Positions 16,301 through 49,733 of a stretch of DNA of 64,000 bases are shown here, in pieces. The stretch is from Phaeosaccion multiseriatum (Eukaryota; Protista; Ochrophyta, other classes): contig OZ218950.1 of NCBI GenBank assembly GCA_965112735.1, positions 6,076,001 to 6,140,000 of the forward strand. Reading direction: 5' to 3'. Below the pieces are notes generated by a model. The model did not search any database, was not told the DNA's origin, and was given only the letters and a program-made list of their open reading frames with translations. Within the stretch, counting starts at the first letter, position 1, and the number at the start of each line of letters is the position of its first letter. The position numbers and the translations under genes were made by a program.

Positions 16301-17279
16301 TACACACAATATCCTACACCCTATTCTCACCTTTCCCTCTGCATATACCCTACCTGATGCCCTACACTCTATACCTTCTACCCTATACCCTATACCCTAT
16401 ACCCTGCCCTACCTTATGCCCTATACACTACACCCTGCCAAGGTACGGCGAGCACATCATCACGCGTATTGCAGACTCTCTCGAGCCCGACGTCCGAGAC
16501 AAGGTAAGAGCAGGCGGGGCAAGTGAGGCTACGCGAGCAAACATTCTTCCTCCTCCTACGGCAACTACTCTACCCTTACCACTACGACTACACTTCCCTT
16601 TATACCCTCGCCTCCCCTCCCTCCCGTCATGGACGTGAATGGAATCGACCCCCAAACAATCAACTCTCCTCTCAACAGGTGGATCAGCTCCGCTCCTCCG
16701 AGGGCTCCGGCGAGGCATCCAAGGCCCTAAAGGGGGTGGTTTCCGCATCCGAGGTGGTGGTGCCCTTCGCGCAGGTGGTAGCGGGCAAGGAGCGATTCGA
16801 CATTTGCCGCATGTTCTTGGCGTCACTGCAGTTGGTAAGTGTGGCAGTGGCAGTGGCAGTACATGTATGGCGTTCAGTTTCAGTTTAGTGACATCGATGA
16901 TAGTACAGTGTCAACCATATCCATATAATATCGATAGGGAATCGAGCTGGTCTCTTCTTTGCTGGTTCCTTCGCTCATAGCCCCCTCTCTCCCCTGCCCT
17001 GTCCCTCTGTCTCCCTCCCTCCCTCTCTCTCCCCCCCTCCCCTACTCTCTCTCTCTCCCTCTCCCCTCCCCCCCTCTCTCTCCCTCTGCCGCCCCGTCCC
17101 ACCAGGCCAACAACGGCAACTTGTCTCTCCACCACGGCGCTGATGCCTCTCAGCAGCTGTTGCGTCCCTTTGAGCTCGAGCTGGCATCTGTCAAGGGGGT
17201 GCGCAACATCAGCAGCTCCTACCTTGCACCTTCCGTTCAGGGGGCAGCAGCAGCAGTTGGTGATACAGCTGTGGAGTAG
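13389..17279 (+). CDS. NCAPH2: Condensin-II complex kleisin subunit H2 (CAP-H2); exons 13389-14111, 14335-15373, 15714-15957, 16443-16503, 16679-16834, 17106-17279
   Basis: N-terminal RFKHLLQPIRDLAQNWDIDIA..LEDYL and LNFAEAALVIQGS..VYSRKVEHLY; middle DPWEALDPH..KPF; TYEDLCRSHI..W..RLEP; C-terminal DICRMFLASLQLANNGNL, all characteristic of CAP-H2. Confidence 0.95.
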
Positions 17280-18166
17280 GGGGAGTCAATTTGAGAGATT
17301 GGCGACTCGACTTCATTGTGTCAATCACGTGTGCGAGCAAGCGAAAATGTAACGCACTGGGTCACAAGTGGCAGCAGCAGCAGCACAGCCCTGCAGCATT
17401 TGGCGATACAAGTGGTTGTTGCTTTTGACTCTGGGATGGGAGATGAGGTGTCGTGTAGTGTGTGAGTGATCTGCGTGAACAAACGAATAAACACCAGAAC
17501 GGCAGCAAGGAGGGACGGTGTCGCCACGGCGGCGGAGAGAGACAAAAAGAAGAATAAACACTCACCTCCAAGACACCTAATGTTACCAAAGACTTTGTGG
17601 GCGGTATTGCACTCCCCTTGCCCACCCCTACCTGGCAAGCGTAACAAAAATAACTCAACTCGGCGGTGGAGGCACTTTAGGGGGGGTGGAGGGCCCTCTG
17701 GGCTGCAAGACACCCTTACGTAAGACCCGCATGGCCCTTCCCTAAGGAACAGGAGTTTCAGTTTGTTAGACCTCCACACGCTGCAGGGCCACAGAACTGA
17801 ACTTGATAGAGGTTGCAGGAGACAACGATGCCGGCATTCGACTTGTCTCGACGAGGGCAACACGACGCGCATGTTCAAACTCGCCAAAACAGTAGTTTGG
17901 GGTGGAAAGGGGGGTGTGTCTCTAAAACGGAGGTGTCTTGGATGTAAGTATATTTTAATTATAATAATTACTTCGAAGTAAAATTTAAACTGAAAATACG
18001 AAACAAATGTCTGGACTAATAATGGAACAATGGTGATGAACCTCCGACTAACAACAGGTGAAGAAGGTAGGGTGATACTAGGAGAGTACCCATCAAATCG
18101 ATACAATATCAATACATATCTATCTGTCTGTCTATAAATCAACCAAGACACGCGGGGAATCAATAA

Positions 18167-20893
18167 TTAAAACATAATACCGCCGTGCATGGTCACAAAG
18201 CTGCTGGAGGGGGAGAAGGCGTCTTCAGCTGCCATCGACAGCAACGACTCTTCCCTGGACAATGTCAGGGTGCTGCCACCACCCCTCGAGACCATGAGTT
18301 GTGTGTTCATGTCCCTGTCTCTCGACATGGGCATCATGGGGGGGGGCATTTCACTCGCACTCGACGACAGTAGCAGACTGCGCGTGCGCTGCTGTTGCTC
18401 AAAGTCGATTCCCAACTGCTCCTCTTCCTCCTCCTCCTCCTCCTCCTCCTGTACGAGCTCCTCGTCCTCCCTCTCCAACCTGACCCACGCCGCCTCGTCC
18501 TCCTCCTCCTCCTCCTCCATCTCCGCCCCCACCTGCTCTTCCTCCTCCGCCTCGTCCTCCTCGTCGTCGTCTTCCTGCTCAAAGTCAACAAGCCCAGTGT
18601 AGTCTTCCTCATCCTCCGACTCGTCACCGCCTCCACCCCCACCCCCGCCCCTTCCCCTCGTGAGATCGAATCCGAGCAGTTCCTCTGTGAACAGCTGAGT
18701 AAAGTCGTGTTTGCTGCCCCTCTTGCTCCCCAACACTGCGTTGCAGGGTTCCTTGGCGCCCCAAACGGCGGGTTTCTCCGTGAACTTGGCGTCGAAATTT
18801 CCCACCGCAACTGTCACCTCCTCCTGCCCCCCCTCCCCCCCCTGCTGCTGCGCCTGTTGCTGCTGCTGCTGCTGGAGCAACGTTTGCTGAGGCAGCAGCG
18901 GCGGGGTGAGGCTGCGGCTCTTGGCATCCTTCCAGTTCAGCACCCCGTCGAAGAACGAGCTCCTCTGAACCTCCCTCCAGCTTGTCATTCGCTTGCCCGT
19001 GCGCACTTGCAGCAACTGAGCAATGAGCTGCTTGGCCTCCTTGTCCACCGCCTTGCCGCGGTACGAGTACTCGCCCGCCATAATGAGCGCAGCGGTAGAG
19101 TCCACCCTCCTCCCTCCGGAGCCCCTCGCACCACCTCTCGCCGCAGTCGCCAGAGCCGCAGCAGTCGCCGCAGACATGGGCATGCCTTGGGGGCGCCAGA
19201 ACGGACTGTGGCCCATGTACAATTCAAACACAAAGCACCCAAACTGCCAAAAGTCGGCATCCAAGCCGTAGCCCCTGCCTGTAAACACCTCGGGGGCCAA
19301 GTACACTTTCGTACCGCACATGGTGAAGGTTCTCTCCGGATCGGGCTCCAACTTGCGCTTTGCTGCGACGGCGGCGGCCGCAGCTCCTGCTGCCCCTCCT
19401 TTGGTGCCCCACTTGCCCCCCTCCGAGGAGGCCGACGAGGAGGAGGAGTTTAAGGAGTAGTCCGCGCTGCTGCTATTGTCCGGCCTCTTGAGGCGCTTGG
19501 CAAGGCCCAAGTCGCCCAGCTTCACGTGTCCATAGGCGTCCACCAGCACATTCTCGGGCTTAATATCGCGGTGCAGAATCTTGTGCTTGTGTAAATGCTG
19601 CAGGCCCAGCGCCACCTCTGCGGCGTAGAAGGCAATGGCTTTGCGGTCCAGCAGCTGCTGCGTGCCTAGGCCAGCGCTGCTTGCCTTCTTTGCAGCAGCT
19701 GCTGCTGCTGCTGCCCCCGCCCTGCCCCCCCCCCTTGCCAGTGCTGCCCTTCTCGCCTCTGCTGCTGCCTCTAATGCTGCTGCTGCCTCTGCAGCCGCCC
19801 CCGTCCTCCGCCCCCGCCGCAGCAGCTCAAACATGTCCCCCCCGGCGCAGAACTCAAAGCCATAATATAGGAAGCCTCCCTCTCGAAAGGCCGTGCGCAG
19901 CGAAACGACAAAGTCGCTCCTGGGCAGGGCGCCGAGCACGTTGCGCTCGTTGATGAGCACCTTGGGCTTGTACTTGTGCAGGAGCTTAATCTCCTTCATG
20001 GCGAGGAGCTCCACCTCCTCCTCCTTGCCCTCCTTCTCACTCTTCTGCTTGATCTTTCGGCTCACCAGCAGCACACGCCCGAAATTCCCCTGCCCAATCA
20101 CCGAGTGCAGCTTAAAGTCGTCCACCGTCACCCGCCTCCTCGCGGCGAGCATCAGCGCCGCCACCCACCGCTGCTTCTCCACCGCCGTGCTTGCCGCCAA
20201 GGTGATAGTACGCGAGCCGCTGCTGCCGCTGCTGCTGCTGCCGTCACCCCCTGCCTTCCCCCCCGTCTTACCCCCCTCTGCCCCGGCAGGAAGCTTAATG
20301 GAGAAGGCGTGTCGCCCCCTCTGCGACTGGCCGGGCTCCTCGCTAATGACGGTCCCGGGCTTGCCGAGATCAAAGACGGAGGTCCAGCCCACGCGGTGGT
20401 TGCTGGACCTGCTGCTGGTGCCATCAACACTGCTGCTGCTCTTGCCGCTAGAACTGCTATTGATGGACCTCGTGGAGTGTGAGGTCAAGGCCGTCATGCT
20501 GCTGTAGCTGCTGACCATGGTGGTGCGGCTCTCGTGGTTGCGGTTGTGGGAGTGGGACAGAGGTCGACCGCTGCTGCTGCCCCCCGCGTCGAGATACAGC
20601 TGCTTCATGGCGTCGTGAGAAATGTCGGCCGGGCCAAAGGTGGGCTCCTTCCACACCAGCAGCACGGCGCCCCTCAGCTCGTAGTAGTGCAGTTTCTGAG
20701 CCTCGCTCTTCCACATGCCCGTGTATCGCGCCTTGCGCATCAAAAACCCCAGTCGCGCGGGCCGCAAGCTCGCCAGAACAGTGTCGGCTTCTCGTGGCGT
20801 GGCGGACGCCGCAGCGGCCATGGCCTTGGGGTTAGATGGTGGCTGCCCTGGCCGTGGCCGACGGCGACTGCCGCTGCTGGTGAGACTTGCCAT
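18167..20893 (-). CDS. PH-domain AGC-family Ser/Thr kinase (Akt/PKB-like), apparently intronless, acidic C-tail (~908 aa)
   Basis: PH: GFLMRK...YYELRGAVL...ITLAASTAVEKQRWVAAL. Kinase: DFKLHSVIGQGNFGRV, AMK, HRDIKPEN, KLGDLGLAK, TMCGTKVYLAPE, DFWQFG. AGC C-tail NFDAKFT. First ATG at 20893 (the ORF track extends to an upstream GTG). Confidence 0.9.
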   Translation of the reverse strand: MASLTSSGSRRRPRPGQPPSNPKAMAAAASATPREADTVLASLRPARLGFLMRKARYTGMWKSEAQKLHYYELRGAVLLVWKEPTFGPADISHDAMKQLYLDAGGSSSGRPLSHSHNRNHESRTTMVSSYSSMTALTSHSTRSINSSSSGKSSSSVDGTSSRSSNHRVGWTSVFDLGKPGTVISEEPGQSQRGRHAFSIKLPAGAEGGKTGGKAGGDGSSSSGSSGSRTITLAASTAVEKQRWVAALMLAARRRVTVDDFKLHSVIGQGNFGRVLLVSRKIKQKSEKEGKEEEVELLAMKEIKLLHKYKPKVLINERNVLGALPRSDFVVSLRTAFREGGFLYYGFEFCAGGDMFELLRRGRRTGAAAEAAAALEAAAEARRAALARGGGRAGAAAAAAAAKKASSAGLGTQQLLDRKAIAFYAAEVALGLQHLHKHKILHRDIKPENVLVDAYGHVKLGDLGLAKRLKRPDNSSSADYSLNSSSSSASSEGGKWGTKGGAAGAAAAAVAAKRKLEPDPERTFTMCGTKVYLAPEVFTGRGYGLDADFWQFGCFVFELYMGHSPFWRPQGMPMSAATAAALATAARGGARGSGGRRVDSTAALIMAGEYSYRGKAVDKEAKQLIAQLLQVRTGKRMTSWREVQRSSFFDGVLNWKDAKSRSLTPPLLPQQTLLQQQQQQQAQQQGGEGGQEEVTVAVGNFDAKFTEKPAVWGAKEPCNAVLGSKRGSKHDFTQLFTEELLGFDLTRGRGGGGGGGGDESEDEEDYTGLVDFEQEDDDEEDEAEEEEQVGAEMEEEEEEDEAAWVRLEREDEELVQEEEEEEEEEEQLGIDFEQQQRTRSLLLSSSASEMPPPMMPMSRDRDMNTQLMVSRGGGSTLTLSREESLLSMAAEDAFSPSSSFVTMHGGIMF

Positions 20894-22299
20894 GGCGTTG
20901 CAGTTTCTATTGCCTCCTCTGCGGTTTGTTGCTCTCCCCCTTTCAAACGCCAATTTTCTGATCGGTGTGCTGCGGCTGTTACTTCCTGCCACTCCTGCGG
21001 CTTCTTCTGCTGCTGCTGGCTGCTGCTGCTGCTCCTTCTCCTCCTTCTAGTGTTCCCAAGCTGCTGGGGGTTGTGCTGACGGCCTCCCTTTATAATCTAT
21101 TTCCTCTCTGCTGTTACCGTCTCCTCCTTGTGCTCGTCACATGGGTGCTCAAAAAATTCGGCGTTTAGGAGCTCCGTACACGAGCCCGGGCCGCAAAAGC
21201 ATATGGGTGCAATTTCTGCGTACGTTTTTCTCTCACCCGTGCGTCAGAGTAGAGTAGTATGTGCTATATGCTGGAGAGGGGAGAATTGATGAGAGTTAAG
21301 TATTGGCAGGGCAGAAAGATGAATTGACAAATTGGCACTGCCGGAGGGGCAGGTACTTGTATGTGGGGATGGGGGGGAGCGGGCTGTGTGGGCAGTTAAT
21401 GGTTAAATCGATGTCGACACTGGATATCGATCTCTATATCGCCGTTACTTCCCCCCTCCTCTTCTAACATGGTGTAGCTAATAAGACGCTTTCCCACAAC
21501 CCGTGCAAGTACGACGCTAGTCTCCAGAGAGGGAGATATCCCAACAAGCTATGTGCGGATAGGTAAAAGGGGTTTCGACAAAGTGCCGTGCTTGTGAAGG
21601 CTTCGGTGCCCGTATTGTCGAGTATTGGTAGAGAGTCATAAGTAGCCTTCGTCAGTCTCGAAGAACCCCCAGGTTTCCGGCTGCTCGTATTAAACCCCCA
21701 AGCATAGCTAAGATGTCGCAGCTGATGCGCAACAAGCTGACACCGGCGGTGGCAGCTGATGGTTGGCCGGCCGGCCGTAGCAGGTAGCAGGTAGTAAGAA
21801 AGAAAGAAAGAAAAGGCAAAAAGAAATCGGTAGCCGGAAATGGAAGGCTCTGCACCAGGAGCTCCCAAGTAAGGTTGATGTCGAGGATGGTGAGGCTAAA
21901 AATTAGGATACTCTGTACTGAGTCGACCCACCCGGGTGCGAGGGAGGGGTGAGGGGTGAGGGACGGGAAGACCACACTACAGACGCGGGGCAGCCAGCAG
22001 GCGCAGGACAAGACGGGCGTGGAGGGGGCATCAGCCAAGACTGCGGCATCATCTCTGACTCAGGCACAGGGCTCCTCCCTACTCCAGCGATGCATTTGCT
22101 AGATACAGTCTATTAGTAGAAGATTAATGAAAAAAAATTAGTCACCCCCCCCCCTGCTGTACAATCCATACAAAAATACAAAAATACAAAAAATGTCCTC
22201 GTCCGGCGGCGATTTGTCACCGCGGACTATTATGTAGCGCACTCTGAAACCCCATGCCCCTCTCCCCTCTTTGTATCAAAACTCCCCCTCCCCTCCTCT

Positions 22300-23280
22300 T
22301 CACTTGGAGGCGGTCTTTCGAGCCCTATCGGTGTCCTTGTCCGCCTCTGGGGGGGCCTGCTTGGTCCTACGTGAAGGCCGCACCACGGCTTCCGGCTTGG
22401 GGATGTCGAGGAGAGTCTTAACTCCCTTGACCATGACATAGCTGTGGTCGTAGTCCGGCGCCCAGTAGTTGTGTCCACCAGGGCCGTGAACTTGCACACC
22501 GCACAGCACGGCGTAGTCCTCCTTCTCGCTGTCCACGGTGTTCTGCAGGTAGCGCTCGATCTGCTTCACAATGACGTCCTTGGCGAGCTTGGTGAGCTCC
22601 GCCAGGTCCTCGCCGCCCTTGCCCTTCTTGGCATTGAGCGCCTCGATGAGCATGGCCGACAGAGCCGTCATCTCAAGGTCGGGGTCGCTGCAGAAGAAAC
22701 GAGCGAATGACAAGAGGGGGGAATGTGAGCAGGCATGAATCCCGTAGTACAGCCCTCCACTTGACACCTTGCCTCTCTCTCTGCCCCGTCCACCGCGCCC
22801 CTCTCTCGCACTCACCTCGTCTCGAGCTTTGGCACGTCCAGTGGCGTCTTGCCCTCGCACTTGCTCAGCTGCCCGTGCAGCCCCGCCAGAGCGCCGCACG
22901 CCTTGGAGTGGGACTTCATGTGCTCCCTCTCGCAAGTCCCGAGCTCCCCCTTGGCCCCGATGCCGATGTGCGGGGCGAAGAAGTACACGTACTTGGGCCG
23001 GGAGCCCTCGGGCCCGGTGGTGGGAGCGTGCGCGTGCATAGCGCCGAAGGCCGTGTTGCCCGCGAAGCAGAGCCCGCCCAGGCCCCTCATGGAGAAGGGC
23101 TCCCCGAGCTCCTCCTTGACGAGCCTCACCAAAGTAGTGCAGATCTCGTCGCGGCAGACGCCCACGCAAGGGATGCACGTGTTGTGGGCAAAGCCGTGCG
23201 TCCTGAGGGCTGCGGCGGCCAGTTTTACGAACTTGGCCTCCTGTATGGGTAACGAGACGGGGGAAGCAACAAAAGTCAGT

Positions 23281-23318
<38 letters not shown>

Positions 23319-23730
23319 CGGCGGCAAACAGACGAACGGAGCGGGCAGTATCTTTTTTTCGTCCCCCCCCCTCTTTTCAAGGCCAGCTCGACCTACCTCA
23401 AACGCATGGCCGAAGTGCTCCGCAACCTGGTCGTGGAAGCCCGCCGGTGTGCGTTCGAAGCTGAAGGCCCTTTGCAAGAACTCCATCTGCCAATCCCCAT
23501 CAGGCAGGAGCAGTAAAAAAGACGGGGTGGGGTGGAAGGGTGGGTAAGCAGGCGCGGGAGCAAAACGGAGTATGAAGAGAGCAGGAAAGAAAAGGTAGAG
23601 GGTGGCACCAATAGGCCGCAAAGAGGGGCCACCGGCACCACCGCAGCGCTGTGTGCATCCTCACCTTTTTCATCACATCCTTGCTCATCGTCCACGCCGT
23701 CGTCCTCTCCGTCGCCATTGCAGGTGCCAT
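22300..23730 (-). CDS. LCIB/LCIC-family (theta-class) carbonic anhydrase, copy 1, 5' type A; exons 23730-23665, 23486-23397, 23240-22816, 22687-22300 (322 aa)
   Basis: GVCRDE, GLGGL.F.G..AFGA..AHAP, YVYFFAPHIGIG..GELG, ACGAL, YAVLCGVQVHGP match the LCIB family; Zn ligands Cys-His-Cys are intact; three GT-AG introns keep the frame. Confidence 0.92.
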
Positions 23731-24472
23731 TGTCTGTTTACAGCCGGTCTAGTAGCCAGAGCTTCGTTAGGGTGGAAAGGAAAGGGGGAGGAGGGTGGCG
23801 AAGAAAAGCTAGTATGTTAAAGATGTTTGTGAGTGGAGAGTTGTGTGTAAAAGGGGGGGTGTGGAGGCGTTGTCAGGTGTGTAGGCGATGTCAGGTGGAT
23901 TGAGGGGGGGAGAGGAATAAAATAAATAAACCCCCCGCCTTCCGGGCCCCGGGCCCTCCACGAGAGCAAGCAGCAACTTCCAATTTCCGTTTTTCCCGCG
24001 AAATGTCAGAGACTTCAACTGGAATGAAGGCGGTGGCTGTGTTTCACCCGCCTCGCTGACAGCGCATAGGAGGGCAAAAGGGACGGGCAGACAGCACTCC
24101 AGACGCGGGACAACACGCGCAGGACAAGACGGGCGTGGGGGCGGCATCAGCCAAGACTGCGGCGGTTCATGCCTTCGAGGAGTTCCGGCAGCAGCCCTCC
24201 TACACGTTCGGCCGGTATAGCAGGGATGAAGGGGAGAGTTCTTCCCTCCGAGCTGTTAACTTGATATGATATAGTCTATTAGTCTAAAATATTATCCCTT
24301 CTACTCGCTCTGTAATTATACAAATGAGTCCCCCCCCTTCAACTGCTGTACAATCCTTACAAAAATGTCCTCGTCCGGCGGCGATTTGTCACCGCGGACT
24401 ATTATGTAGCGCACTCTGAAACCCCATGCCCCTCTCCCCTCTTTGTATCAAAACTCCCTCTCCCCCTCCTCT

Positions 24473-25453
24473 TCACTTGGAGGCGGTCTTTCGAGCCCTG
24501 TCGGTGTCCTTGTCCGCCTCTGGGGGGGCCTGCTTGGTCCTGCGTGAAGGCCGCACCACGGCTTCCGGCTTGGGGATGTCGAGGAGAGTCTTGACTCCCT
24601 TGACCATGACATAGCTGTGGTCGTAGTCCGGCGCCCAGTAGTTGTGTCCACCAGGGCCGTGAACTTGCACACCGCACAGCACGGCGTAGTCCTCCTTCTC
24701 GCTGTCCACGGTGTTCTGCAGGTAGCGCTCGATCTGCTTCACAATGACGTCCTTGGCGAGCTTGGTGAGCTCCGCCAGGTCCTCGCCGCCCTTGCCCTTC
24801 TTGGCATTGAGCGCCTCGATGAGCATGGCCGACAGAGCCGTCATCTCAAGGTCGGGGTCGCTGCAGAAGAAACGAGCGAATGACAAGAGGGGGGAATGTG
24901 AGCAGGCATGAATCCCGTAGTACAGCCCTCCACTTGACACCTTGCCTCTCTCTCTGCCCCGTCCACCGCGCCCCTCTCTCGCACTCACCTCGTCTCGAGC
25001 TTTGGCACGTCCAGTGGCGTCTTGCCCTCGCACTTGCTCAGCTGCCCGTGCAGCCCCGCCAGAGCGCCGCACGCCTTGGAGTGGGACTTCATGTGCTCCC
25101 TCTCGCAAGTCCCGAGCTCCCCCTTGGCCCCGATGCCGATGTGCGGGGCGAAGAAGTACACGTACTTGGGCCGGGAGCCCTCGGGCCCGGTGGTGGGAGC
25201 GTGCGCGTGCATAGCGCCGAAGGCCGTGTTGCCCGCGAAGCAGAGCCCGCCCAGGCCCCTCATGGAGAAGGGCTCCCCGAGCTCCTCCTTGACGAGCCTC
25301 ACCAAAGTAGTGCAGATCTCGTCGCGGCAGACGCCCACGCAAGGGATGCACGTGTTGTGGGCAAAGCCGTGCGTCCTGAGGGCTGCGGCGGCCAGTTTTA
25401 CGAACTTGGCCTCCTGTATGGGTAACGAGACGGGGGAAGCAACAAAAGTCAGT

Positions 25454-25491
<38 letters not shown>

Positions 25492-25903
25492 CGGCGGCAA
25501 ACAGACGAACGGAGCGGGCAGTATCTTTTTTTCGTCCCCCCCCCTCTTTTCAAGGCCAGCTCGACCTACCTCAAACGCATGGCCGAAGTGCTCCGCAACC
25601 TGGTCGTGGAAGCCCGCCGGTGTGCGTTCGAAGCTGAAGGCCCTTTGCAAGAACTCCATCTGCCAATCCCCATCAGGCAGGAGCAGTAAAAAAGACGGGG
25701 TGGGGTGGAAGGGTGGGTAAGCAGGCGCGGGAGCAAAACGGAGTATGAAGAGAGCAGGAAAGAAAAGGTAGAGGGTGGCACCAATAGGCCGCAAAGAGGG
25801 GCCACCGGCACCACCGCAGCGCTGTGTGCATCCTCACCTTTTTCATCACATCCTTGCTCATCGTCCACGCCGTCGTCCTCTCCGTCGCCATTGCAGGTGC
25901 CAT
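24473..25903 (-). CDS. LCIB-family theta-carbonic anhydrase, copy 2, 5' type A
   Basis: Near-identical to copy 1 at +2173 bp; same four-exon structure. Confidence 0.92.
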
Positions 25904-26645
25904 TGTCTGTTTACAGCCGGTCTAGTAGCCAGAGCTTCGTTAGGGTGGAAAGGAAAGGGGGGAGGAGGGTGGCGAAGAAAAGCTAGTATGTTAAAGATGT
26001 TTGTGAGTGGAGAGTTGTGTGTAAAAGGGGGGGTGTGGAGGCGTTGTCAGGTGTGTAGGCGATGTCAGGTGGATTGAGGGGGGGAGAGGAATAAAATAAA
26101 TAAACCCCCCGCCTTCCGGGCCCCGGGCCCTCCACGAGAGCAAGCAGCAACTTCCAATTTCCGTTTTTCCCGCGAAATGTCAGAGACTTCAACTGGAATG
26201 AAGGCGGTGGCTGTGTTTCACCCGCCTCGCTGACAGCGCATAGGAGGGCAAAAGGGACGGGCAGACAGCACTCCAGACGCGGGACAACACGCGCAGGACA
26301 AGACGGGCGTGGGGGCGGCATCAGCCAAGACTGCGGCGGTTCATGCCTTCGAGGAGTTCCGGCAGCAGCCCTCCTACACGTTCGGCCGGTATAGCAGGGA
26401 TGAAGGGGAGAGTTCTTCCCTCCGAGCTGTTAACTTGATATGATATAGTCTATTAGTCTAAAATATTATCCCTTCTACTCGCTCTGTAATTATACAAATG
26501 AGTCCCCCCCCTTCAACTGCTGTACAATCCTTACAAAAATGTCCTCGTCCGGCGGCGATTTGTCACCGCGGACTATTATGTAGCGCACTCTGAAACCCCA
26601 TGCCCCTCTCCCCTCTTTGTATCAAAACTCCCTCTCCCCTCCTCT

Positions 26646-27626
26646 TCACTTGGAGGCGGTCTTTCGAGCCCTGTCGGTGTCCTTGTCCGCCTCTGGGGGG
26701 GCCTGCTTGGTCCTGCGTGAAGGCCGCACCACGGCTTCCGGCTTGGGGATGTCGAGGAGAGTCTTGACTCCCTTGACCATGACATAGCTGTGGTCGTAGT
26801 CCGGCGCCCAGTAGTTGTGTCCACCAGGGCCGTGAACTTGCACACCGCACAGCACGGCGTAGTCCTCCTTCTCGCTGTCCACGGTGTTCTGCAGGTAGCG
26901 CTCGATCTGCTTCACAATGACGTCCTTGGCGAGCTTGGTGAGCTCCGCCAGGTCCTCGCCGCCCTTGCCCTTCTTGGCATTGAGCGCCTCGATGAGCATG
27001 GCCGACAGAGCCGTCATCTCAAGGTCGGGGTCGCTGCAGAAGAAACGAGCGAATGACAAGAGGGGGGAATGTGAGCAGGCATGAATCCCGTAGTACAGCC
27101 CTCCACTTGACACCTTGCCTCTCTCTCTGCCCCGTCCACCGCGCCCCTCTCTCGCACTCACCTCGTCTCGAGCTTTGGCACGTCCAGTGGCGTCTTGCCC
27201 TCGCACTTGCTCAGCTGCCCGTGCAGCCCCGCCAGAGCGCCGCACGCCTTGGAGTGGGACTTCATGTGCTCCCTCTCGCAAGTCCCGAGCTCCCCCTTGG
27301 CCCCGATGCCGATGTGCGGGGCGAAGAAGTACACGTACTTGGGCCGGGAGCCCTCGGGCCCGGTGGTGGGAGCGTGCGCGTGCATAGCGCCGAAGGCCGT
27401 GTTGCCCGCGAAGCAGAGCCCGCCCAGGCCCCTCATGGAGAAGGGCTCCCCGAGCTCCTCCTTGACGAGCCTCACCAAAGTAGTGCAGATCTCGTCGCGG
27501 CAGACGCCCACGCAAGGGATGCACGTGTTGTGGGCAAAGCCGTGCGTCCTGAGGGCTGCGGCGGCCAGTTTTACGAACTTGGCCTCCTGTATGGGTAACG
27601 AGACGGGGGAAGCAACAAAAGTCAGT

Positions 27627-27663
<37 letters not shown>

Positions 27664-28104
27664 GCGGCGGCAAGCAGACGAACGGAGCGGGCAGTATCTT
27701 TTTTTCGTCCCCCCCCCCTCTTTTCAAGGCGAGCTCGACCCACCTCAAACGCATGGCCGAAGTGCTCCGCAACCTGGTCGTGGAAGCCCGCCGGTGTGCG
27801 TTCGAAGCTGAAAGCCCTTTGCAAGAACTCCATCTGCCAAATCCAATCAGGTAGGCGCAGTAAAAAAGACGCGGTGGGGTGGAAGGGTTGGTGAGCGGGC
27901 GCGGGAACAAAACGGCAGATGTAGGGAGCAGGAAAGGAAGGGTAGAAGGGGGACAAAAAGGCCGCAAGGGTAGCGGCGGATAGAGGGGCGACGGCCGGGC
28001 GGGCAGCACAGCAGCGCTGTGCGCATCCTCACCTTTTTCATCACATCCTTGCTCATCATCGTCGTCCACGCCGTCGTCCTCTCCGTCGCCATTGCAGGTG
28101 CCAT
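26646..28104 (-). CDS. LCIB-family theta-carbonic anhydrase, copy 3, 5' type B
   Basis: Same exons 2-4; exon 1 reads MAPAMATERTTAWTTMMSKDVMKK; intron 1 and upstream region differ from type A. Confidence 0.92.
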
Positions 28105-29025
28105 TGTCTGTTTACAGCTGGTGTAGCAGTAGCCAGAGCTTCTTTAGGGTGGAAGGGAAGTGGTGGAGGAGAGTACGCAGAAAAGCTGGCGGCTCAAAGG
28201 TGGTTGTGAGTGAGGAGTGTGAGGAAAAGGGGAGGGTGGAGGCGATGTCAGGTGGAGAGTGGAGGCGGGAGAGAGGAACACAAAAAGTACTTCGAAGTCA
28301 ATGAACCCCCCGCTCTCCACGAGAGCCAGCACACACCACACCACAGCATCCAAGGCAGTGTCCAGTTTCAGCGCGCTGTGCGGCTTTTAACGCGCCGATT
28401 TTTACTGCAATGGAAAGGCATATGGAAGGCTCTCTGCACCCAGACCTCCCCTTCCCCCCCTCCGGATGTCGAGGATGCTGAGGCTTTTGTGACACTCATG
28501 TACGAGTCGACCTACCCGCCGACGAATGAAGATGGTGCGGTGCGTTTCACCCCCCCCCTTCCTGAATCCCTTCCTCGTCGCTGAGAGCGGACAAGAGCGC
28601 ACAAGGGGCTCGGCGCTAATGAGGAGGGACGGGTAGACAGCACTGCAGACGCGGGACAGCAGGCGCAGGACAAGACGGGCGTGGGGGGGGCATCAGCCAA
28701 GACTGCGGCGGTTGATGCCTACTACTAGTACTACGAGGAGTTCAGGCAGCAGGGCTCCCACGTACGGCCGGTAGTACAGGGATTGAGGGGAGAGCTACTT
28801 GATATAGTCTATTAGTCTAAAATGTTATCCCTTTCTACTCGCTCTGCATGTATAAAAATGAGTCTCTTTCCCCCCTCCCTTCAACTGCTGTACAATCCTT
28901 ACAAAAATGTCCTCGTCCGGCGGCGATTTGTCACCTCGGACTATTGTATGTAGCGCATATGTAGCGCACTCTGAAACCGTCTCCCCTCTCTCCTCTTTGT
29001 ATCAAAACTCCCTCTCTCCTCCTCT

Positions 29026-30455
29026 TCACTTGGAGGCGGTCTTTCGAGCCCTGTCGGTGTCCTTGTCCGCCTCTGGGGGGGCCTGCTTGGTCCTGCGTGA
29101 AGGCCGCACCACGGCTTCCGGCTTGGGGATGTCGAGGAGAGTCTTAACTCCCTTGACCATGACATAGCTGTGGTCGTAGTCCGGCGCCCAGTAGTTGTGT
29201 CCACCAGGGCCGTGAACTTGCACACCGCACAGCACGGCGTAGTCCTCCTTCTCGCTGTCCACGGTGTTCTGCAGGTAGCGCTCGATCTGCTTCACAATAA
29301 CGTCCTTGGCGAGCTTGGTGAGCTCCGCCAGGTCCTCGCCGCCCTTGCCCTTCTTGGCGTTGAGCGCCTCGATGAGCATGGCCGACAGAGCCGTCATCTC
29401 AAGGTCGGGGTCGCTGCAGAAGAAACGAGCGAATGGAGGGAAAGGGGGACAAGAGGGGGGAATGTGAGCAGGCATGAATACCGTAGCCACTTGACTCCTT
29501 GCCTCTCTCTCTGCCCCATCCACCGCGCCCCTCTCTCGCACTCACCTCGTCTCGAGCTTTGGCACGTTCAGTGGCGTCTTGCCCTCGCACTTACTCAGCT
29601 GCCCGTGCAGCCCCGCCAGAGCGCCGCACGCCTTGGAGTGGGACTTCATGTGCTCCCTCTCGCAAGTCCCGAGCTCCCCCTTGGCCCCGATGCCGATGTG
29701 CGGGGCGAAGAAGTACACGTACTTGGGCCGGGAGCCCTCGGGCCCGGTGGTGGGAGCGTGCGCGTGCATAGCGCCGAAGGCCGTGTTGCCCGCGAAGCAG
29801 AGCCCGCCCAGGCCCCTCATGGAGAAGGGCTCCCCGAGCTCCTCCTTGACGAGCCTCACCAAAGTAGTGCAGATCTCGTCGCGGCAGACGCCCACGCAAG
29901 GGATGCACGTGTTGTGTGCAAAGCCGTGCGTCCTGAGGGCTGCGGCGGCGAGTTTTACGAACTTGGCCTCCTGTATGGGTAACGAGACGGGGGAAGCAAC
30001 AAAAGTCAGTAGTAGCAGCAGCAGCCAGCAGCAGCAGCAGTAGCGGCGGCAAACAGACGAACGGAGCGGGCAGTATCTTTTTTTTGTCCCCCCCCCTCTT
30101 TTCAAGGCCAGCTCGACCTACCTCAAACGCATGGCCGAAGTGCTCTGCAACCTGGTCGTGGAAGCCCGCCGGTGTGCGTTCGAAGCTGAAGGCCCTTTGC
30201 AAGAACTCCATCTGCCAATCCCCATCAGGTAGGCGCAGTAAAAAAGACGGGGGGAGGTGGAAGGGTGGGTAAGCAGGCGCGGGAGCAAAACGGAGTATGA
30301 AGAGAGCAGGAAAGAAAAGGTAGAGGGTGGCACCAATAGGCCGCAAAGAGGGGCCACCGGCACCACCGCAGCGCTGTGTGCATCCTCACCTTTTTCATCA
30401 CATCCTTGCTCATCGTCCACGCCGTCGTCCTCTCCGTCGCCATTGCAGGTGCCAT
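29026..30455 (-). CDS. LCIB-family theta-carbonic anhydrase, copy 4, 5' type A (variant intron 3; PLNV instead of PLDV)
   Basis: Same four-exon structure, intact frame and motifs. Confidence 0.92.
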
Positions 30456-31246
30456 TGTCTGTTTACAGCCGGTCTAGTAGCCAGAGCTTCGTTAGGGTGG
30501 AAAGGAAAGGGGGGAGGAGGGTGGCGAAGAAAAGCTAGTATGTTAAAGATGTTTGTGAGTGGAGAGTATAGTGTAAAAAGGGGAGTGTGGAGGCGTTGTC
30601 AGGTGTGTATATAGGCGATGTCAGGGTGGATTGAGGGGGGGAGCGGAATAAAATAAATAAACCCCCCGCCTTCCGGGCCCCGGGCCCTCCACGAGAGCAA
30701 GCAGCAACTTCCAATTTCCATTTTTCCCGCGAAATTGTCAGAGACTTCAACTGGAATGCAGGCGCTGGCTGTGTTTCACCCGCCGCCCCTCCTGCCTCGC
30801 TGACAGCGCACAGGAGGGCAAAAGGGGTACGGGGCTAATGAGGAGGGACGGGCAGACAACACTCCAGACGCGGGACAGCACGCGCAGGACAAGACGGGCG
30901 TGGGGGCGGCATCAGCCAAGACTGCGGCGGTTCATGCCTTCGAGGAGTTCCGGCAGCAGCCCTCCTACACGTTCGGCCGGTATAGCAGGGATGAAGGGGA
31001 GAGTTCTTCCCTCCGAGCTGTTAACTTGATATGATATAGTCTATTAGTCTAAAATGTTATCCCTTCTACTCGCTCTGCATGTATAAAAATGAGTCTCTTT
31101 CCCCCCTCCCTTCAACTGCTGTACAATCCTTACAAAAATGTCCTCGTCCGGCGGCGATTTGTCACCTCGGACTATTGTATGTAGCGCACTCTAAAACCCC
31201 ATGCCCCTCTCCCCTCTTTGTATCAAAACTCCCTCTCCCCTCCTCT

Positions 31247-32233
31247 TCACTTGGAGGCGGTCTTTCGAGCCCTGTCGGTGTCCTTGTCCGCCTCTGGGGG
31301 GGCCTGTTTGGTCCTACGTGAAGGCCGCACCACGGCTTCCGGCTTGGGGATGTCGAGGAGAGTCTTGACTCCCTTGACCATGACATAGCTGTGGTCGTAG
31401 TCCGGCGCCCAGTAGTTGTGTCCACCAGGGCCGTGAACTTGCACACCGCACAGCACGGCGTAGTCCTCCTTCTCGCTGTCCACGGTGTTCTGCAGGTAGC
31501 GCTCGATCTGCTTCACAATGACGTCCTTGGCGAGCTTGGTGAGCTCCGCCAGGTCCTCGCCGCCCTTGCCCTTCTTGGCATTGAGCGCCTCGATGAGCAT
31601 GGCCGACAGAGCCGTCATCTCAAGGTCGGGGTCGCTGCAGAAGAAACGAGCGAATGACAAGAGGGGGGAATGTGAGCAGGCATGAATCCCGTAGTACAGC
31701 CCTCCACTTGACACCTTGCCTCTCTCTCTGCCCCGTCCACCGCGCCCCTCTCTCGCACTCACCTCGTCTCGAGCTTTGGCACGTCCAGTGGCGTCTTGCC
31801 CTCGCACTTGCTCAGCTGCCCGTGCAGCCCCGCCAGAGCGCCGCACGCCTTGGAGTGGGACTTCATGTGCTCCCTCTCGCAAGTCCCGAGCTCCCCCTTG
31901 GCCCCGATGCCGATGTGCGGGGCGAAGAAGTACACGTACTTGGGCCGGGAGCCCTCGGGCCCGGTGGTGGGAGCGTGCGCGTGCATAGCGCCGAAGGCCG
32001 TGTTGCCCGCGAAGCAGAGCCCGCCCAGGCCCCTCATGGAGAAGGGCTCCCCGAGCTCCTCCTTGACGAGCCTCACCAAAGTAGTGCAGATCTCGTCGCG
32101 GCAGACGCCCACGCAAGGGATGCACGTGTTGTGTGCAAAGCCGTGCGTCCTGAGGGCTGCGGCGGCCAGTTTTACGAACTTGGCCTCCTGTATGGGTAAC
32201 GAGACGGGGGAAGCAACAGAAGTCAGTAGTAGT

Positions 32234-32279
<46 letters not shown>

Positions 32280-32713
32280 GCGGCGGCAAACAGACGAACG
32301 GAGCGGGCAGTATCTTTTTTTCGTCCCCCCCCCCTCTTTTCAAGGCCAGCTCGACCTACCTCAAACGCATGGCCGAAGTGCTCTGCAACCTGGTCGTGGA
32401 AGCCCGCCGGTGTGCGTTCGAAGCTGAAAGCCCTTTGCAAGAACTCCATCTGCCAAATCCAATCAGGTAGGCGCAGTAAAAAAGACGCGGTGGGGTGGAA
32501 GGGTTGGTGAGCGGGCGTGGGAACAAAACGGCAGATGTAGGGAGCAGGAAAGGAAGGGTAGACCAACAGGCCGCAAGGGTAGCGGCGGATAGAGGGGCGA
32601 CGGCCGGGCGGGCAGCACAGCAGCGCTGTGCGCATCCTCACCTTTTTCATCACATCCTTGCTCATCATCGTCGTCCACGCCGTCGTCCTCTCCGTCGCCA
32701 TTGCAGGTGCCAT
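31247..32713 (-). CDS. LCIB-family theta-carbonic anhydrase, copy 5, 5' type B
   Basis: Same four-exon structure, intact frame and motifs. Confidence 0.92.
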
Positions 32714-33531
32714 TGTCTGTTTACAGCTGGTGTAGTAGTAGCCAGAGCTTCTTTAGGGTGGAAGGGAAGTGGTGGAGGAGAGTACCGCAGAAAAGCTGGC
32801 GGCTCAAAGGTGGTTGTGAGTGAGGAGTGTGAGGAAAAGGGGAGGGTGGAGGCGATGTCAGGTGGAGAGTGGAGGCGGGAGAGAGGAACACAAAAAGTAC
32901 TTCGAAGTCAATGAACCCCCCGCTCTCCACGAGAGCCAGCACAGCATCCAAGGCAGTGTCCAGTTTCAGCGCGCTGTGCGGCTTTTAACGCGCCGATCTT
33001 GTGTGACACTCATGTACGAGTCGACCTACCCGCCGACGAATGAAGATGGTGCGGTGCGTTTCACCCCCCCCCCTTCCTGAATCCCTTCCTCGTCGCTGAG
33101 AGCGGACAAGAGCGCACAAGGGGCTCGGGGCTAATGAGGAGGGACGGGTAGACAGCACTGCAGACGCGGGACAGCAGGCGCAGGACAAGACGGGCGTGGG
33201 GGGGGGCATCAGCCAAGACTGCGGCGGTTGATGCCTACTACTAGTTCTACGAGGAGTTCAGGCAGCAGGGCTCCCACGTACGGCCGGTAGTACAGGGATT
33301 GAGGGGAGAGCTACTTGATATAGTCTATTAGTCGAAAATGTTGTCCCTTTCTACTCGCTCTGCATGTATAAAAATGAGTCTCTTTCCCCCCACCCTTCAA
33401 CTGCTGTACAATCCTTACAAAAATGTCCTCGTCCGGCGGCGATTTGTCACCTCGGACTATTGTATGTAGCGCACTCTAAAACCCCATGCCCCTCTCCCCT
33501 CTTTGTATCAAAACTCCCTCTCCCCTCCTCT

Positions 33532-34522
33532 TCACTTGGAGGCGGTCTTTCGAGCCCTATCGGTGTCCTTGTCCGCCTCTGGTGGGGCCTGCTTGGTCCT
33601 GCGTGAAGGCCGCACCACGGCTTCCGGCTTGGGGATGTCGAGGAGAGTCTTGACTCCCTTGACCATGACATAGCTGTGGTCGTAGTCCGGCGCCCAGTAG
33701 TTGTGTCCACCAGGGCCGTGAACTTGCACACCGCACAGCACGGCGTAGTCCTCCTTCTCGCTGTCCACGGTGTTCTGCAGGTAGCGCTCGATCTGCTTCA
33801 CAATGACGTCCTTGGCGAGCTTGGTGAGCTCCGCCAGGTCCTCGCCGCCCTTGCCCTTCTTGGCGTTGAGCGCCTCGATGAGCATGGCCGACAGAGCCGT
33901 CATCTCAAGGTCGGGGTCGCTGCAGAAGAAACGAGCGAATGGAGGGAAAGGGGGACAAGAGGGGGGAATGTGAGCAGGCATGAATCCCGTAGCCACTTGA
34001 CTCCTTGCCTCTCTCTCTGCCCCATCCACCGCGCCCCTCTCTCGCACTCACCTCGTCTCGAGCTTTGGCACGTCCAGTGGCGTCTTGCCCTCGCACTTGC
34101 TCAGCTGCCCGTGCAGCCCCGCCAGAGCGCCGCACGCCTTGGAGTGGGACTTCATGTGCTCCCTCTCGCAAGTCCCGAGCTCCCCCTTGGCCCCGATGCC
34201 GATGTGCGGGGCGAAGAAGTACACGTACTTGGGCCGGGAGCCCTCGGGCCCGGTGGTGGGAGCGTGCGCGTGCATAGCGCCGAAGGCCGTGTTGCCCGCG
34301 AAGCAGAGCCCGCCCAGGCCCCTCATGGAGAAGGGCTCCCCGAGCTCCTCCTTGACGAGCCTCACCAAAGTAGTGCAGATCTCGTCGCGGCAGACGCCCA
34401 CGCAAGGGATGCACGTGTTGTGTGCAAAGCCGTGCGTCCTGAGGGCTGCGGCGGCGAGTTTTACGAACTTGGCCTCCTGTATGGGTAACGAGACGGGGGA
34501 AGCAACAGAAGTCAGAAGTAGT

Positions 34523-34556
<34 letters not shown>

Positions 34557-34966
34557 GCGGCAAGCAGACGAACGGAGCGGGCAGTATTTTTTTTCGTCCC
34601 CCCCCCCTCTTTTCAAGGCCAGCTCGACCTACCTCAAACGCATGGCCGAAGTGCTCTGCAACCTGGTCGTGGAAGCCCGCCGGTGTGCGTTCAAAGCTGA
34701 AAGCCCTTTGCAAGAACTCCATCTGCCAATCCCCATCAGGCAGGAGCAGTAAAAAAGACGGGGTGGGGTGGAAGGGTGGGTAAGCAGGCGCGGGAGCAAA
34801 ACGGAGTATGAAGAGAGCAGGAAAGAAAAGGTAGAGGGTGGCACCAATAGGCCGCAAAGAGGGGCCACCGGCACCACCGCAGCGCTGTGTGCATCCTCAC
34901 CTTTTTCATCACATCCTTGCTCATCGTCCACGCCGTCGTCCTCTCCGTCGCCATTGCAGGTGCCAT
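33532..34966 (-). CDS. LCIB-family theta-carbonic anhydrase, copy 6, 5' type A (variant intron 3)
   Basis: Same four-exon structure, intact frame and motifs. Confidence 0.92.
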
Positions 34967-35718
34967 TGTCTGTTTACAGCCGGTCTAGTAGCCAGAGCTT
35001 CGTTAGGGTGGAAAGGAAAGGGGGGAGGAGGGTGGCGAAGAAAAGCTAGTATGTTAAAGATGTTTGTGAGTGGAGAGTTGTGTGTAAAAGGGGGAGTGTG
35101 GAGGCGTTGTCAGGTGTGTAGGCGATGTCAGGTGGATTGAGGGGGGGAGAGGAATAAAATAAATAAACCCCCCGCCTTCCGGGCCCCGGGCCCTCCACGA
35201 GAGCAAGCAGCAACTTCCAATTTCCGTTTTTCCCGCGAAATGTCAGAGACTTCAACTGGAATGAAGGCGGTGGCTGTGTTTCACCCGCCTCGCTGACAGC
35301 GCATAGGAGGGCAAAAGGGACGGGCAGACAGCACTCCAGACGCGGGACAACACGCGCAGGACAAGACGGGCGTGGGGGCGGCATCAGCCAAGACTGCGGC
35401 GGTTCATGCCTTCGAGGAGTTCCGGCAGCAGCCCTCCTACACGTTCGGCCGGTATAGCAGGGATGAAGGGGAGAGTTCTTCCCTCCGAGCTGTTAACTTG
35501 ATATGATATAGTCTATTAGTCTAAAATGTTATCCCTTCTACTCGCTCTGCATGTATAAAAATGAGTCTCTTTCCCCCCTCCCTTCAACTGCTGTACAATC
35601 CTTACAAAAATGTCCTCGTCCGGCGGCGATTTGTCACCTCGGACTATTGTATGTAGCGCACTCTAAAACCCCATGCCCCTCTCCCCTCTTTGTATCAAAA
35701 CTCCCTCTCCCCTCCTCT

Positions 35719-36703
35719 TCACTTGGAGGCGGTCTTTCGAGCCCTGTCGGTGTCCTTGTCCGCCTCTGGGGGGGCCTGTTTGGTCCTACGTGAAGGCCGC
35801 ACCACGGCTTCCGGCTTGGGGATGTCGAGGAGAGTCTTGACTCCCTTGACCATGACATAGCTGTGGTCGTAGTCCGGCGCCCAGTAGTTGTGTCCACCAG
35901 GGCCGTGAACTTGCACACCGCACAGCACGGCGTAGTCCTCCTTCTCGCTGTCCACGGTGTTCTGCAGGTAGCGCTCGATCTGCTTCACAATGACGTCCTT
36001 GGCGAGCTTGGTGAGCTCCGCCAGGTCCTCGCCGCCCTTGCCCTTCTTGGCATTGAGCGCCTCGATGAGCATGGCCGACAGAGCCGTCATCTCAAGGTCG
36101 GGGTCGCTGCAGAAGAAACGAGCGAATGACAAGAGGGGGAATGTGAGCAGGCATGAATCCCGTAGTACAGCCCTCCACTTGACACCTTGCCTCTCTCTCT
36201 GCCCCGTCCACCGCGCCCCTCTCTCGCACTCACCTCGTCTCGAGCTTTGGCACGTCCAGTGGCGTCTTGCCCTCGCACTTGCTCAGCTGCCCGTGCAGCC
36301 CCGCCAGAGCGCCGCACGCCTTGGAGTGGGACTTCATGTGCTCCCTCTCGCAAGTCCCGAGCTCCCCCTTGGCCCCGATGCCGATGTGCGGGGCGAAGAA
36401 GTACACGTACTTGGGCCGGGAGCCCTCGGGCCCGGTGGTGGGAGCGTGCGCGTGCATAGCGCCGAAGGCCGTGTTGCCCGCGAAGCAGAGCCCGCCCAGG
36501 CCCCTCATGGAGAAGGGCTCCCCGAGCTCCTCCTTGACGAGCCTCACCAAAGTAGTGCAGATCTCGTCGCGGCAGACGCCCACGCAAGGGATGATGCACG
36601 TGTTGTGGGCAAAAGCCGTGCGTCCTGAGGGCTGCGGGCGGCCAGTTTTACGAACTTGGCCTCCTGTATGGGTAACGAGACGGGGGAAGCAACAAAAGTC
36701 AGT

Positions 36704-36740
<37 letters not shown>

Positions 36741-37181
36741 GCGGCGGCAAGCAGACGAACGGAGCGGGCAGTATCTTTTTTTCGTCCCCCCCCCCTCTTT
36801 TCAAGGCGAGCTCGACCCACCTCAAACGCATGGCCGAAGTGCTCCGCAACCTGGTCGTGGAAGCCCGCCGGTGTGCGTTCGAAGCTGAAAGCCCTTTGCA
36901 AGAACTCCATCTGCCAAATCCAATCAGGTAGGCGCAGTAAAAAAGACGCGGTGGGGTGGAAGGGTTGGTGAGCGGGCGCGGGAACAAAACGGCAGATGTA
37001 GGGAGCAGGAAAGGAAGGGTAGAAGGGGGACAAAAAGGCCGCAAGGGTAGCGGCGGATAGAGGGGCGACGGCCGGGCGGGCAGCACAGCAGCGCTGTGCG
37101 CATCCTCACCTTTTTCATCACATCCTTGCTTATCATCGTCGTCCACGCCGTCGTCCTCTCCGTCGCCATTGCAGGTGCCAT
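35719..37181 (-). pseudogene. LCIB-family theta-carbonic anhydrase, copy 7, 5' type B, frameshifted in exon 3 (pseudogene or consensus error)
   Basis: Relative to the other copies there are three insertions at ~36590-36640 (+ATG, +A, +G; net +5 nt), giving a premature stop at 36544; otherwise near-identical. Confidence 0.6.
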
Positions 37182-37912
37182 TGTCTGTTTACAGCTGGTG
37201 TAGCAGTAGCCAGAGCTTCTTTAGGGTGGAAGGGAAGTGGTGGAGGAGAGTACGCAGAAAAGCTGGCGGCTCAAAGGTGGTTGTGAGTGAGGAGTGTGAG
37301 GAAAAGGGGAGGGTGGAGGCGATGTCAGGTGGAGAGTGGAGGCGGGAGAGAGGAACACAAAAAGTACTTCGAAGTCAATGAACCCCCCGCTCTCCACGAG
37401 AGCCAGCACAGCATCCAAGGCAGTGTCCAGTTTCAGCGCGCTGTGCGGCTTTTAACGCGCCGATTTTTACTGCAATGGAAAGGCATATGGAAGGCTCTCT
37501 GCACCCAGACCTCCCCTTCCCCCCCTCCGGATGTCGAGGATGCTGAGGCTTTTGTGACACTCATGTACGAGTCGACCTACCCGCCGACGAATGAAGATGG
37601 TGCGGTGCGTTTCACCCCCCCCCTTCCTGAATCCCTTCCTCGTCGCTGAGAGCGGACAAGAGTGCACAAGGGGCTCGGGGCTAACGAGGAGGGACGGGTA
37701 GACAGCACTGCAGACGCGGGACAGCAGGCGGTGGCAGCTGATGGTTGGCCGGCTGGCCGGTCGGCCGGTAGCAGGTCAAGGCGGCCTTGCCCCCCCAAGT
37801 GGCACGCCGACTGGCGCTGGTGGTAGCAGGTAGCACGTCAGGGGTCGAGCATCATGTAGGAAGAAGGATATCCTCCAGACAGGCATAGCACAGTATGCGT
37901 GTGTGGGAGGGG

Positions 37913-38669: not shown

Positions 38670-39028
38670 TCACATCCCTGGAGGGAAGTTGGACACCTGT
38701 GCCATTTCTGACACGGTCAGCCCCCCCGTCTCATAGGAGATCTTCAGCTTCAGCATGAGGGGCTTCTGGCCGTGCTGAGCGTTGGTCAGGTTCATGGCCT
38801 GAAGCAGTACAGAGGGAGAGGGAAGGGGGGTGTGGAGTGTTTCAGGGAGAGCAGAGCAGGGGTGTCGTGCGATGATGGGCAGGGACAAAGTGCACAAATT
38901 CCTTGTCCTCAGTCAGCAGAAGAACATGTGGGACGGAGATCTCCTCAAGTTGCTCTCGCGCCCCACCTCCTCCTTCGAGAACGTGCGTGCGAGAACGGCA
39001 TGCCTCCACTTGTTCTTCCTCTTCCTCC

Positions 39029-39069
<41 letters not shown>

Positions 39070-44107: not shown

Positions 44108-44144
<37 letters not shown>

Positions 44145-48540: not shown

Positions 48541-48592
<52 letters not shown>

Positions 48593-49617: not shown

Positions 49618-49685
<68 letters not shown>

Positions 49686-49689
49686 GCGG

Positions 49690-49732
<43 letters not shown>

Positions 49733-49733
49733 G

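Follow-up and report, generated by a model that had tools for sequence, protein, structure and literature searches.

A Seven-Copy Tandem Array of Near-Identical LCIB/Theta-Carbonic Anhydrase Genes with a Predicted Cytosolic Product in the Ochrophyte Phaeosaccion multiseriatum

Introduction

Why would an alga carry seven nearly identical genes for one putative CO2-converting enzyme side by side? The question is raised by a 64,000-nt stretch of the genome of Phaeosaccion multiseriatum (Ochrophyta), referred to below as the window (GenBank assembly GCA_965112735.1, contig OZ218950.1, positions 6,076,001 to 6,140,000, forward strand). Positions 22300–37181 of the window are occupied by a tandem array of genes of the LCIB/theta-carbonic anhydrase (theta-CA) family, which had been noticed earlier from the sequence alone (the original prediction). 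The answer preferred here is a recent tandem amplification that would raise the dosage of a cytosolic CO2 trap, which in turn would supply the plastid with bicarbonate for uptake; the probability of this whole chain is estimated at about 0.5.

Organization of the Array

Self-comparison of the window and exon modeling placed seven genes head-to-tail on the minus strand, the repeated units spanning from approximately 22185 to 37730. The length of the unit is 2173–2380 bp across the seven copies, and each gene consists of four exons of 66 or 72, 90, 425, and 388 bp, with GT..AG introns. Since adjacent units are 90–97.5% identical across 2–4.6 kb, chance similarity between them is excluded. Copies 1 and 2 are approximately 99.5% alike, and the dimers formed by the two gene classes described below (A and B) are approximately 97% alike. 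Copies 1–6 encode proteins of 322 or 324 aa. At the amino acid level, the copies differ only by a 2-aa (6-bp) indel in exon 1 and by one substitution each in copy 4 (D187N) and copy 7 (M15I), and the CRDE, PHI, and ACG motifs carrying the zinc ligands are intact in the array proteins. In all of these points (the seven head-to-tail four-exon genes, the three kinds of protein difference, and the preserved ligands C81, H143, and C167) the original prediction was confirmed.

All gene coordinates below refer to the minus strand. Copy 1 (22300–23730; exons 23665–23730, 23397–23486, 22816–23240, and 22300–22687) is an intact class A gene encoding 322 aa. Copy 2 (24473–25903; exons 25838–25903, 25570–25659, 24989–25413, and 24473–24860) is likewise intact and of class A; its codons for the residues discussed below are C81 (25327–25329), D83 (25321–25323), H123 (25201–25203), H143 (25141–25143), R157 (25099–25101), and C167 (25069–25071). 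The intact copy 3 (26646–28104; exons 28033–28104, 27744–27833, 27162–27586, and 26646–27033) belongs to class B and encodes 324 aa. Copy 4, of class A (29026–30455; exons 30390–30455, 30122–30211, 29546–29970, and 29026–29413), has the D187N change and a private 11-bp insertion in the 3′ untranslated region (UTR), which is also present in the RNA-like run considered below. Copy 5, of class B (31247–32713; exons 32642–32713, 32360–32449, 31763–32187, and 31247–31634), is intact, with an 84-bp deletion in the spacer upstream of it. Copy 6 (33532–34966; exons 34901–34966, 34633–34722, 34052–34476, and 33532–33919) is an intact class A gene. Copy 7 (35719–37181; exons 37110–37181, 36821–36910, 36234–36663, and 35719–36106) is of class B, carries M15I, and is frameshifted in the assembly.

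As for the frameshift, exon 3 of copy 7 is 430 bp long as assembled, and three insertions (+3, +1, and +1 at about 36590, 36611, and 36636, within 36590–36637, minus strand) break the reading frame, so the earlier statement that all seven genes are intact does not hold for the assembled sequence. These insertions occur neither in the contigs of the three DNA runs nor in those of the RNA-like run. Because they are clustered and missing from all contigs, they are probably assembly consensus errors; assembled contigs, it should be added, drop minor variants, and the DNA contigs also lack the alleles that copies 5 and 7 show at 35779/35788. A true pseudogene was considered and found unlikely, given three indels within 47 bp, no exon substitution, and no trace of the insertions in any contig. 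On this reading, six copies are intact, and copy 7 is probably so as well.

The left flank of the array (21840–22299, no strand assigned) was identified by self-comparison as a diverged homologue of the distal spacer, and the amplified unit is therefore taken to comprise spacer, gene, and upstream region, with redundant ends. In addition, the array is bounded by a direct repeat, 97% identical over 33 bp and about 55 bp long when gaps are allowed, with a left copy at 21745–21790 and a right copy at 37727–37775, both without assigned strand, the latter belonging to a dispersed multi-copy element. An origin by unequal crossover is consistent with this short repeat and with the redundancy of the spacer sequence at the array ends.

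In the DNA runs, the dispersed repeat at the array ends (37727–37850 and 21745–21790) has numerous loose ends and a high summed depth; it is also found in the RNA-like run. A core of approximately 90 bp (21958–22047; present in each spacer, e.g., at 35316–35444) is preserved in every spacer and in the two flanks. A 958-nt contig from the RNA-like run has a match to it that differs at 12 positions, and the core therefore occurs elsewhere in the genome as well.

Divergence and Homogenization of the Copies

According to their 5′ regions, the copies fall into two classes, A (copies 1, 2, 4, and 6) and B (copies 3, 5, and 7), which follow one another as A,A,B,A,B,A,B. The classes differ by 32% in the upstream 300 bp (class A, 23731–24030, minus strand, with counterparts above copies 2, 4, and 6; class B, 28105–28404, minus strand, with counterparts above copies 5 and 7) and by 14.5% in intron 1. 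From exon 2 onward, introns 2 (4%) and 3 (1%) included, differences between the classes are no larger than those within them. The earlier statement that spacers and introns differ more than the proteins therefore stands for the upstream region and intron 1 between classes and fails for introns 2 and 3. In exon 1, the in-frame 6-bp indel is the only difference between A and B, despite flanking DNA that is 15–32% diverged.

The contrast is sharpest between the neighboring copies 2 (A) and 3 (B), which show 26 differences in 177 positions of intron 1 and 0 in 128 of intron 3 (P = 3e-7 for the intron contrast), with zero differences in exon 3, intron 3, and exon 4. Informative sites require at least 11 recombination events (minimum number of recombination events, Rm, 11). 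These values show both marks of concerted evolution, namely mosaic tracts and a similarity of the head-to-tail copies that exceeds the expectation from their age. Judging from the sequence comparisons, the 3′ part of the genes, non-coding intron 3 included, is homogenized by conversion or unequal crossover, as the original prediction had proposed. A similar homogenization through unequal crossover and conversion characterizes concerted-evolution arrays such as rDNA and histone genes, and the Chlamydomonas CAH4/CAH5 pair, which differs by one residue, is a precedent for near-identical CA duplicates (PMC5876011). Unlike in these systems, homogenization in the present array ends abruptly at intron 1, and two 5′ classes persist in a higher-order repeat.

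The motif CACCTGACA is located at about −150 in all seven copies; it occurs twice in copies 1, 2, and 6 (at 23871 and 23889 upstream of copy 1) and single in the class B upstream region (28246). It may be regarded as a candidate control element. A search of the 450 bp upstream for diatom CO2-responsive elements and Chlamydomonas EEC-type motifs found none.

Within the array, 13 synonymous and 2 non-synonymous sites were counted (P = 3e-7, or 3e-5 allowing transitions only). Comparison with a near-identical environmental gene from another sample (L001) gave proportions of non-synonymous (pN) and synonymous (pS) differences of 0.014 and 0.116, respectively, with introns 10–26% diverged. The array copies are thus under purifying selection.

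Enzyme Family, Catalytic Residues, and Fold

Database searches and fold prediction were run exon by exon, the joined protein being used in local scripts only. The hidden Markov model search that had been suggested together with the original prediction upheld the family assignment: PF18599 (LCIB/theta-CA) matched exon 3 with 115 bits (E = 3e-33) and exon 4 with 42 bits (E = 1e-10), both above the curated cut-off of 25. Sequence matches in the PDB were LCIB, LCIC, and proteins of the PtLCIB3/4 type. The structure model of exon 3 (pLDDT, the predicted local distance difference test, 78, for exon 3 only) shows the beta-CA-like LCIB fold and matches Phaeodactylum PtLCIB4 (5b5y) with a template modeling (TM) score of 0.70 and E = 4e-7.

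The zinc ligands C81, H143, and C167 align with the LCIB/LCIC motifs and are invariant in homologues. Residues C81, D83, E84, H123, H143, R157, and C167 are each kept in 97–100% of the homologue alignments covering them, and the window protein agrees with a 30-sequence alignment at each of its 19 invariant columns. D83 is the Asp after the first Cys, while H123 and R157 align with LCIB residues His162 and Arg194 (residue names from PMC5876011), an equivalence deduced from a numbering offset of 49 that fits both. Also retained is the His at which the mutation H88A reduces the score of the structural match. Position 82 is Arg, as in LCIB and LCIC and in 133 of 180 homologues, the family majority; PtLCIB4 has Ser. 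Recombinant Chlamydomonas LCIB and LCIC contain the full motif and yet were inactive in vitro (PMC5876011), for which reason activity of the array proteins is likely and not assured; on their residues and fold, they are predicted with good confidence to be active carbonic anhydrases.

In a quick tree of 145 domain rows, the window protein formed a long branch in a group of five rows (SH-aLRT support, the Shimodaira–Hasegawa-like approximate likelihood ratio test, 99) whose other members are at most 44% identical to it; the closest member lies on a eukaryote-type contig as a single copy. Apart from the one near-identical environmental copy, database relatives are less than 45% identical. The LCIB family is also present on bacterial-type contigs. 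A basic low-complexity C-terminal tail (residues 291–322, exon 4), invariant among the copies, lies outside the Pfam domain.

Predicted Location of the Protein

The first 45 aa contain no hydrophobic stretch (maximum 9-residue hydropathy 0.19), and every copy has an in-frame stop codon shortly upstream of the ATG, which in class A falls within the transcribed 5′ UTR. Neither a plastid transit peptide of the stromal LCIB/LCIC type, sought in the N-terminus and upstream sequence, nor a signal peptide with plastid or thylakoid targeting of the Pt43233 type, sought in the first 45 aa, was found. A hidden upstream leader exon was rejected for class A, in which exon 1 is contiguous with a 5′ UTR containing an in-frame stop; class B also has an in-frame upstream stop. 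Plastid import in ochrophytes requires a signal peptide. Given the missing leader, the upstream stops, and this requirement, the soluble 35-kDa product is very probably cytosolic, a PF18599 domain without targeting leader being the arrangement of the TpthetaCA4 type. The analogy with stromal LCIB and lumenal theta-CA drawn in the original prediction accordingly finds no support, the protein having no targeting leader.

Read Evidence and Transcription

The read evidence consists of assembled contigs, which indicate presence only, and contig depths are not copy numbers. Three DNA-like runs come from one sample; run X5, listed as “DNA?”, comes from another sample with the same species label. The three DNA runs contain spacers of both classes, the junction of the copy-5 deletion, the copy-4 variants, and a joint from a B copy to the next unit. 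In run X3, copy-specific sequences have contig depths of 51–56 and two-copy variants have 99 and 120; the B upstream region reaches 167, the A spacer 218, and the shared exon 3 has a depth of 574. The depths scale as approximately 1:2:3:4, as the assembly predicts, and fit four A, three B, and about four copies elsewhere; run X4 fits poorly. Reads laid on 36420–36479 and 35953–35989 carry alleles found in none of the seven copies, and a further close paralogue class therefore exists outside the window. This outside class (changes including N243S and K235Q) shares alleles with the environmental gene L001 and is transcribed.

In run X5, exons are covered, intron 3 is skipped exactly (36106–36234), and loose ends fit the exon 2–3 junction. 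Exon 1 of class A is contiguous with 100 nt of 5′ UTR (34967–35067, minus strand, in the RNA-like contig), with an in-frame stop seven codons above the ATG. Because of the exon-only cover and the splice joint, X5 is read as RNA, indicating that the array genes give spliced transcripts. It contains 3′ UTRs of the copy-4 and copy 1–3 types, as well as the outside paralogue class.

Comparison with Known Systems

The cytosolic theta-CA of Thalassiosira pseudonana, TpthetaCA4, has been proposed to turn incoming CO2 into bicarbonate or to buffer pH (10.1101/2025.06.11.659125). It shares with the array protein the PF18599 family and a cytosolic location, which for the array protein is predicted. However, no near-identical tandem array is described for TpthetaCA4 in the literature examined, and the array protein falls outside a deeply separated 27-row clade taken as diatom-like, in a tree that included neither TpthetaCA4 nor any named diatom sequence.

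As for the Phaeodactylum proteins PtLCIB3 and PtLCIB4, the latter, the best structural match, has the same zinc ligands, and its H88A-equivalent His is kept; the identity with the array protein is about 27%, and Arg stands here in place of Ser47. Pt43233 is thylakoid-lumenal, whereas the array protein has no leader. Chlamydomonas LCIB/LCIC (LCIB-E) gave the best PDB sequence match (E = 1.6e-16), with CRDE, PHI, ACG, and the His162/Arg194 equivalents common to both. LCIB is a 448-aa stromal protein that forms a heteromer with LCIC (PMC5876011, PMC10096703), in contrast to the array protein with its 322 aa, no transit peptide, and seven near-identical copies.

Near-identical multi-copy LCIB exists elsewhere: nine LCIB-like proteins from three Closterium strains fall into one 90%-identity cluster. 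The three assemblies (L007–L009) each contain several LCIB-like proteins at least 90% identical, but the three loci checked are single-copy within 10 kb on each side and belong to a different tree branch. No tandem array was found at these three loci or at the two nearest eukaryote-like loci, and a metagenome scan returned distant single matches on short contigs only. In keeping with the original remark that no described near-identical LCIB array of such size was known to its author, literature searches for near-identical tandem arrays of LCIB/theta-CA or other CA genes found no description, their coverage of subscription papers being poor. The enzyme family and the homogenization mechanism are known; the case is set apart by its combination of a leaderless product, a seven-fold array, and two 5′ classes.

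Other Features of the Window

The array adjoins an intronless gene for a 941-aa protein kinase (18167–20992, minus strand; Pkinase E = 1.5e-40) with a PH-like N-terminal stretch, noted by eye, and an acidic tail; a homologue search with it returned none. On the right, the array is bounded by an adaptin gene, apparently AP-1 gamma (38800–44740, minus strand; PF01602). Further genes are that of the condensin II subunit CAP-H2 (13389–17300, plus strand; PF06278; best named match Nannochloropsis oceanica, 60%), a 1370-aa open reading frame (ORF) with two similar membrane-rich halves, a long lysine/glutamate repeat, and no Pfam match (2215–6327, minus strand), and a many-intron gene (47700–59300, plus strand) whose ORF fragments resemble, by eye, NAD-specific glutamate dehydrogenase.

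Discussion

The following sequence of events would best account for the array. An old duplication may have produced an A–B pair, the upstream regions and first introns of which then drifted apart. Unequal crossover would have multiplied the pair to A,A,B,A,B,A,B, with conversion and purifying selection acting together to keep the copies almost the same from exon 2 onward. The cytosolic enzyme would hydrate CO2 diffusing in or leaking from the plastid, and the resulting bicarbonate would supply plastid bicarbonate uptake, with the extra gene copies presumably raising the enzyme level. By analogy with related proteins, a role in carbon acquisition is slightly favored for the array protein. A bolder version is speculative and unlikely. 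In it, some 11 near-identical genes at two loci would be controlled by two alternating promoter classes that respond to different conditions, and would form an uncharacterized family branch as well as the principal CO2 trap in the cytosol for an ochrophyte CO2-concentrating mechanism (CCM) not yet described.

Three observations weigh against the proposed CO2 trap. TpthetaCA4 is 3.6-fold less abundant at low CO2/high pH (10.1101/2025.06.11.659125). The array protein shares the Arg after the first Cys with LCIB and LCIC, the recombinant forms of which were inactive. Finally, class B 5′ ends and the 3′-UTR type of copies 5–7 are absent from the RNA-like contigs (X5), which is suggestive and not proof; because of this, not every copy may add to dosage. 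Of the original prediction of a dosage amplification, the pure form is too simple, there being two diverged 5′ classes, only one of them seen in RNA. The carbon-capture strategy centred on theta-CA that was suggested at the same time likewise goes further than the evidence, a cytosolic diatom theta-CA being one that declines at low CO2.

The same enzyme in the same compartment could, instead of concentrating carbon, buffer pH or provide bicarbonate for carboxylases at high CO2 or in acid. TpthetaCA4 rises at high CO2/low pH, and buffering is among the readings offered for it, although the preprint in question still makes a case for CO2 capture in the cytosol (10.1101/2025.06.11.659125). Hornwort LCIB is not CO2-regulated (PMC8075897), and the occurrence of the family on bacterial-type contigs also suits buffering. 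Nothing speaks directly against this explanation, which is nevertheless held to be unlikely.

It is rather improbable that the genome is simply prone to amplification and that the seven copies arose as a nearly neutral by-product, with the work done by one or a few copies of class A and the rest kept alike by conversion. The direct repeats and redundant spacer sequence at the array ends and the absence of class B 5′ ends from the RNA-like contigs would agree with such an origin, and conversion from selected copies can yield a synonymous excess in all copies. However, six copies are intact and the seventh probably so, an in-frame 6-bp indel is all that separates exon 1 of A from that of B amid 15–32% diverged DNA, and the further close paralogue class is also transcribed.

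Still less probable is a poorly active or partner-dependent protein like Chlamydomonas LCIB, amplified to offset a low specific activity or for a bulk structural or barrier role. The CRDE motif with Arg, as in the inactive recombinant LCIB and LCIC, points in this direction, but Arg is the family majority residue, short bacterial-type members included, and the exon-3 model best matches the active PtLCIB4, although the LCIB crystals are partly disordered. Going by the title of a reference, LCIB reportedly complements CA mutants.

An assembly artefact (fewer true copies, or two haplotypes joined in tandem) is very improbable: the likeness of copies 1 and 2, the apparent consensus errors of copy 7, and the lack of a contig spanning the whole array would fit it, but the synonymous bias cannot stem from read errors, class- and copy-specific contigs and junctions occur in three DNA runs, and the X3 depths, which are not copy numbers and are poorly matched by X4, scale as about 1, 2, 3, and 4.

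Amplification of a cytosolic CO2 trap thus remains the preferred explanation. LCIB/theta-CA has been studied almost only as a plastid protein, and a multi-copy leaderless version points to a large cytosolic demand for CA. The role of the cytosol in the CCM is unsettled, and a strongly selected, transcribed array bears on this compartment. The A/B structure is a natural experiment, in which a single protein is encoded downstream of two diverged 5′ regions with a short motif in common, and it makes regulation by CO2 or light directly testable. In addition, the array protein offers a new enzyme for asking which CRDE-type members of the family are active.

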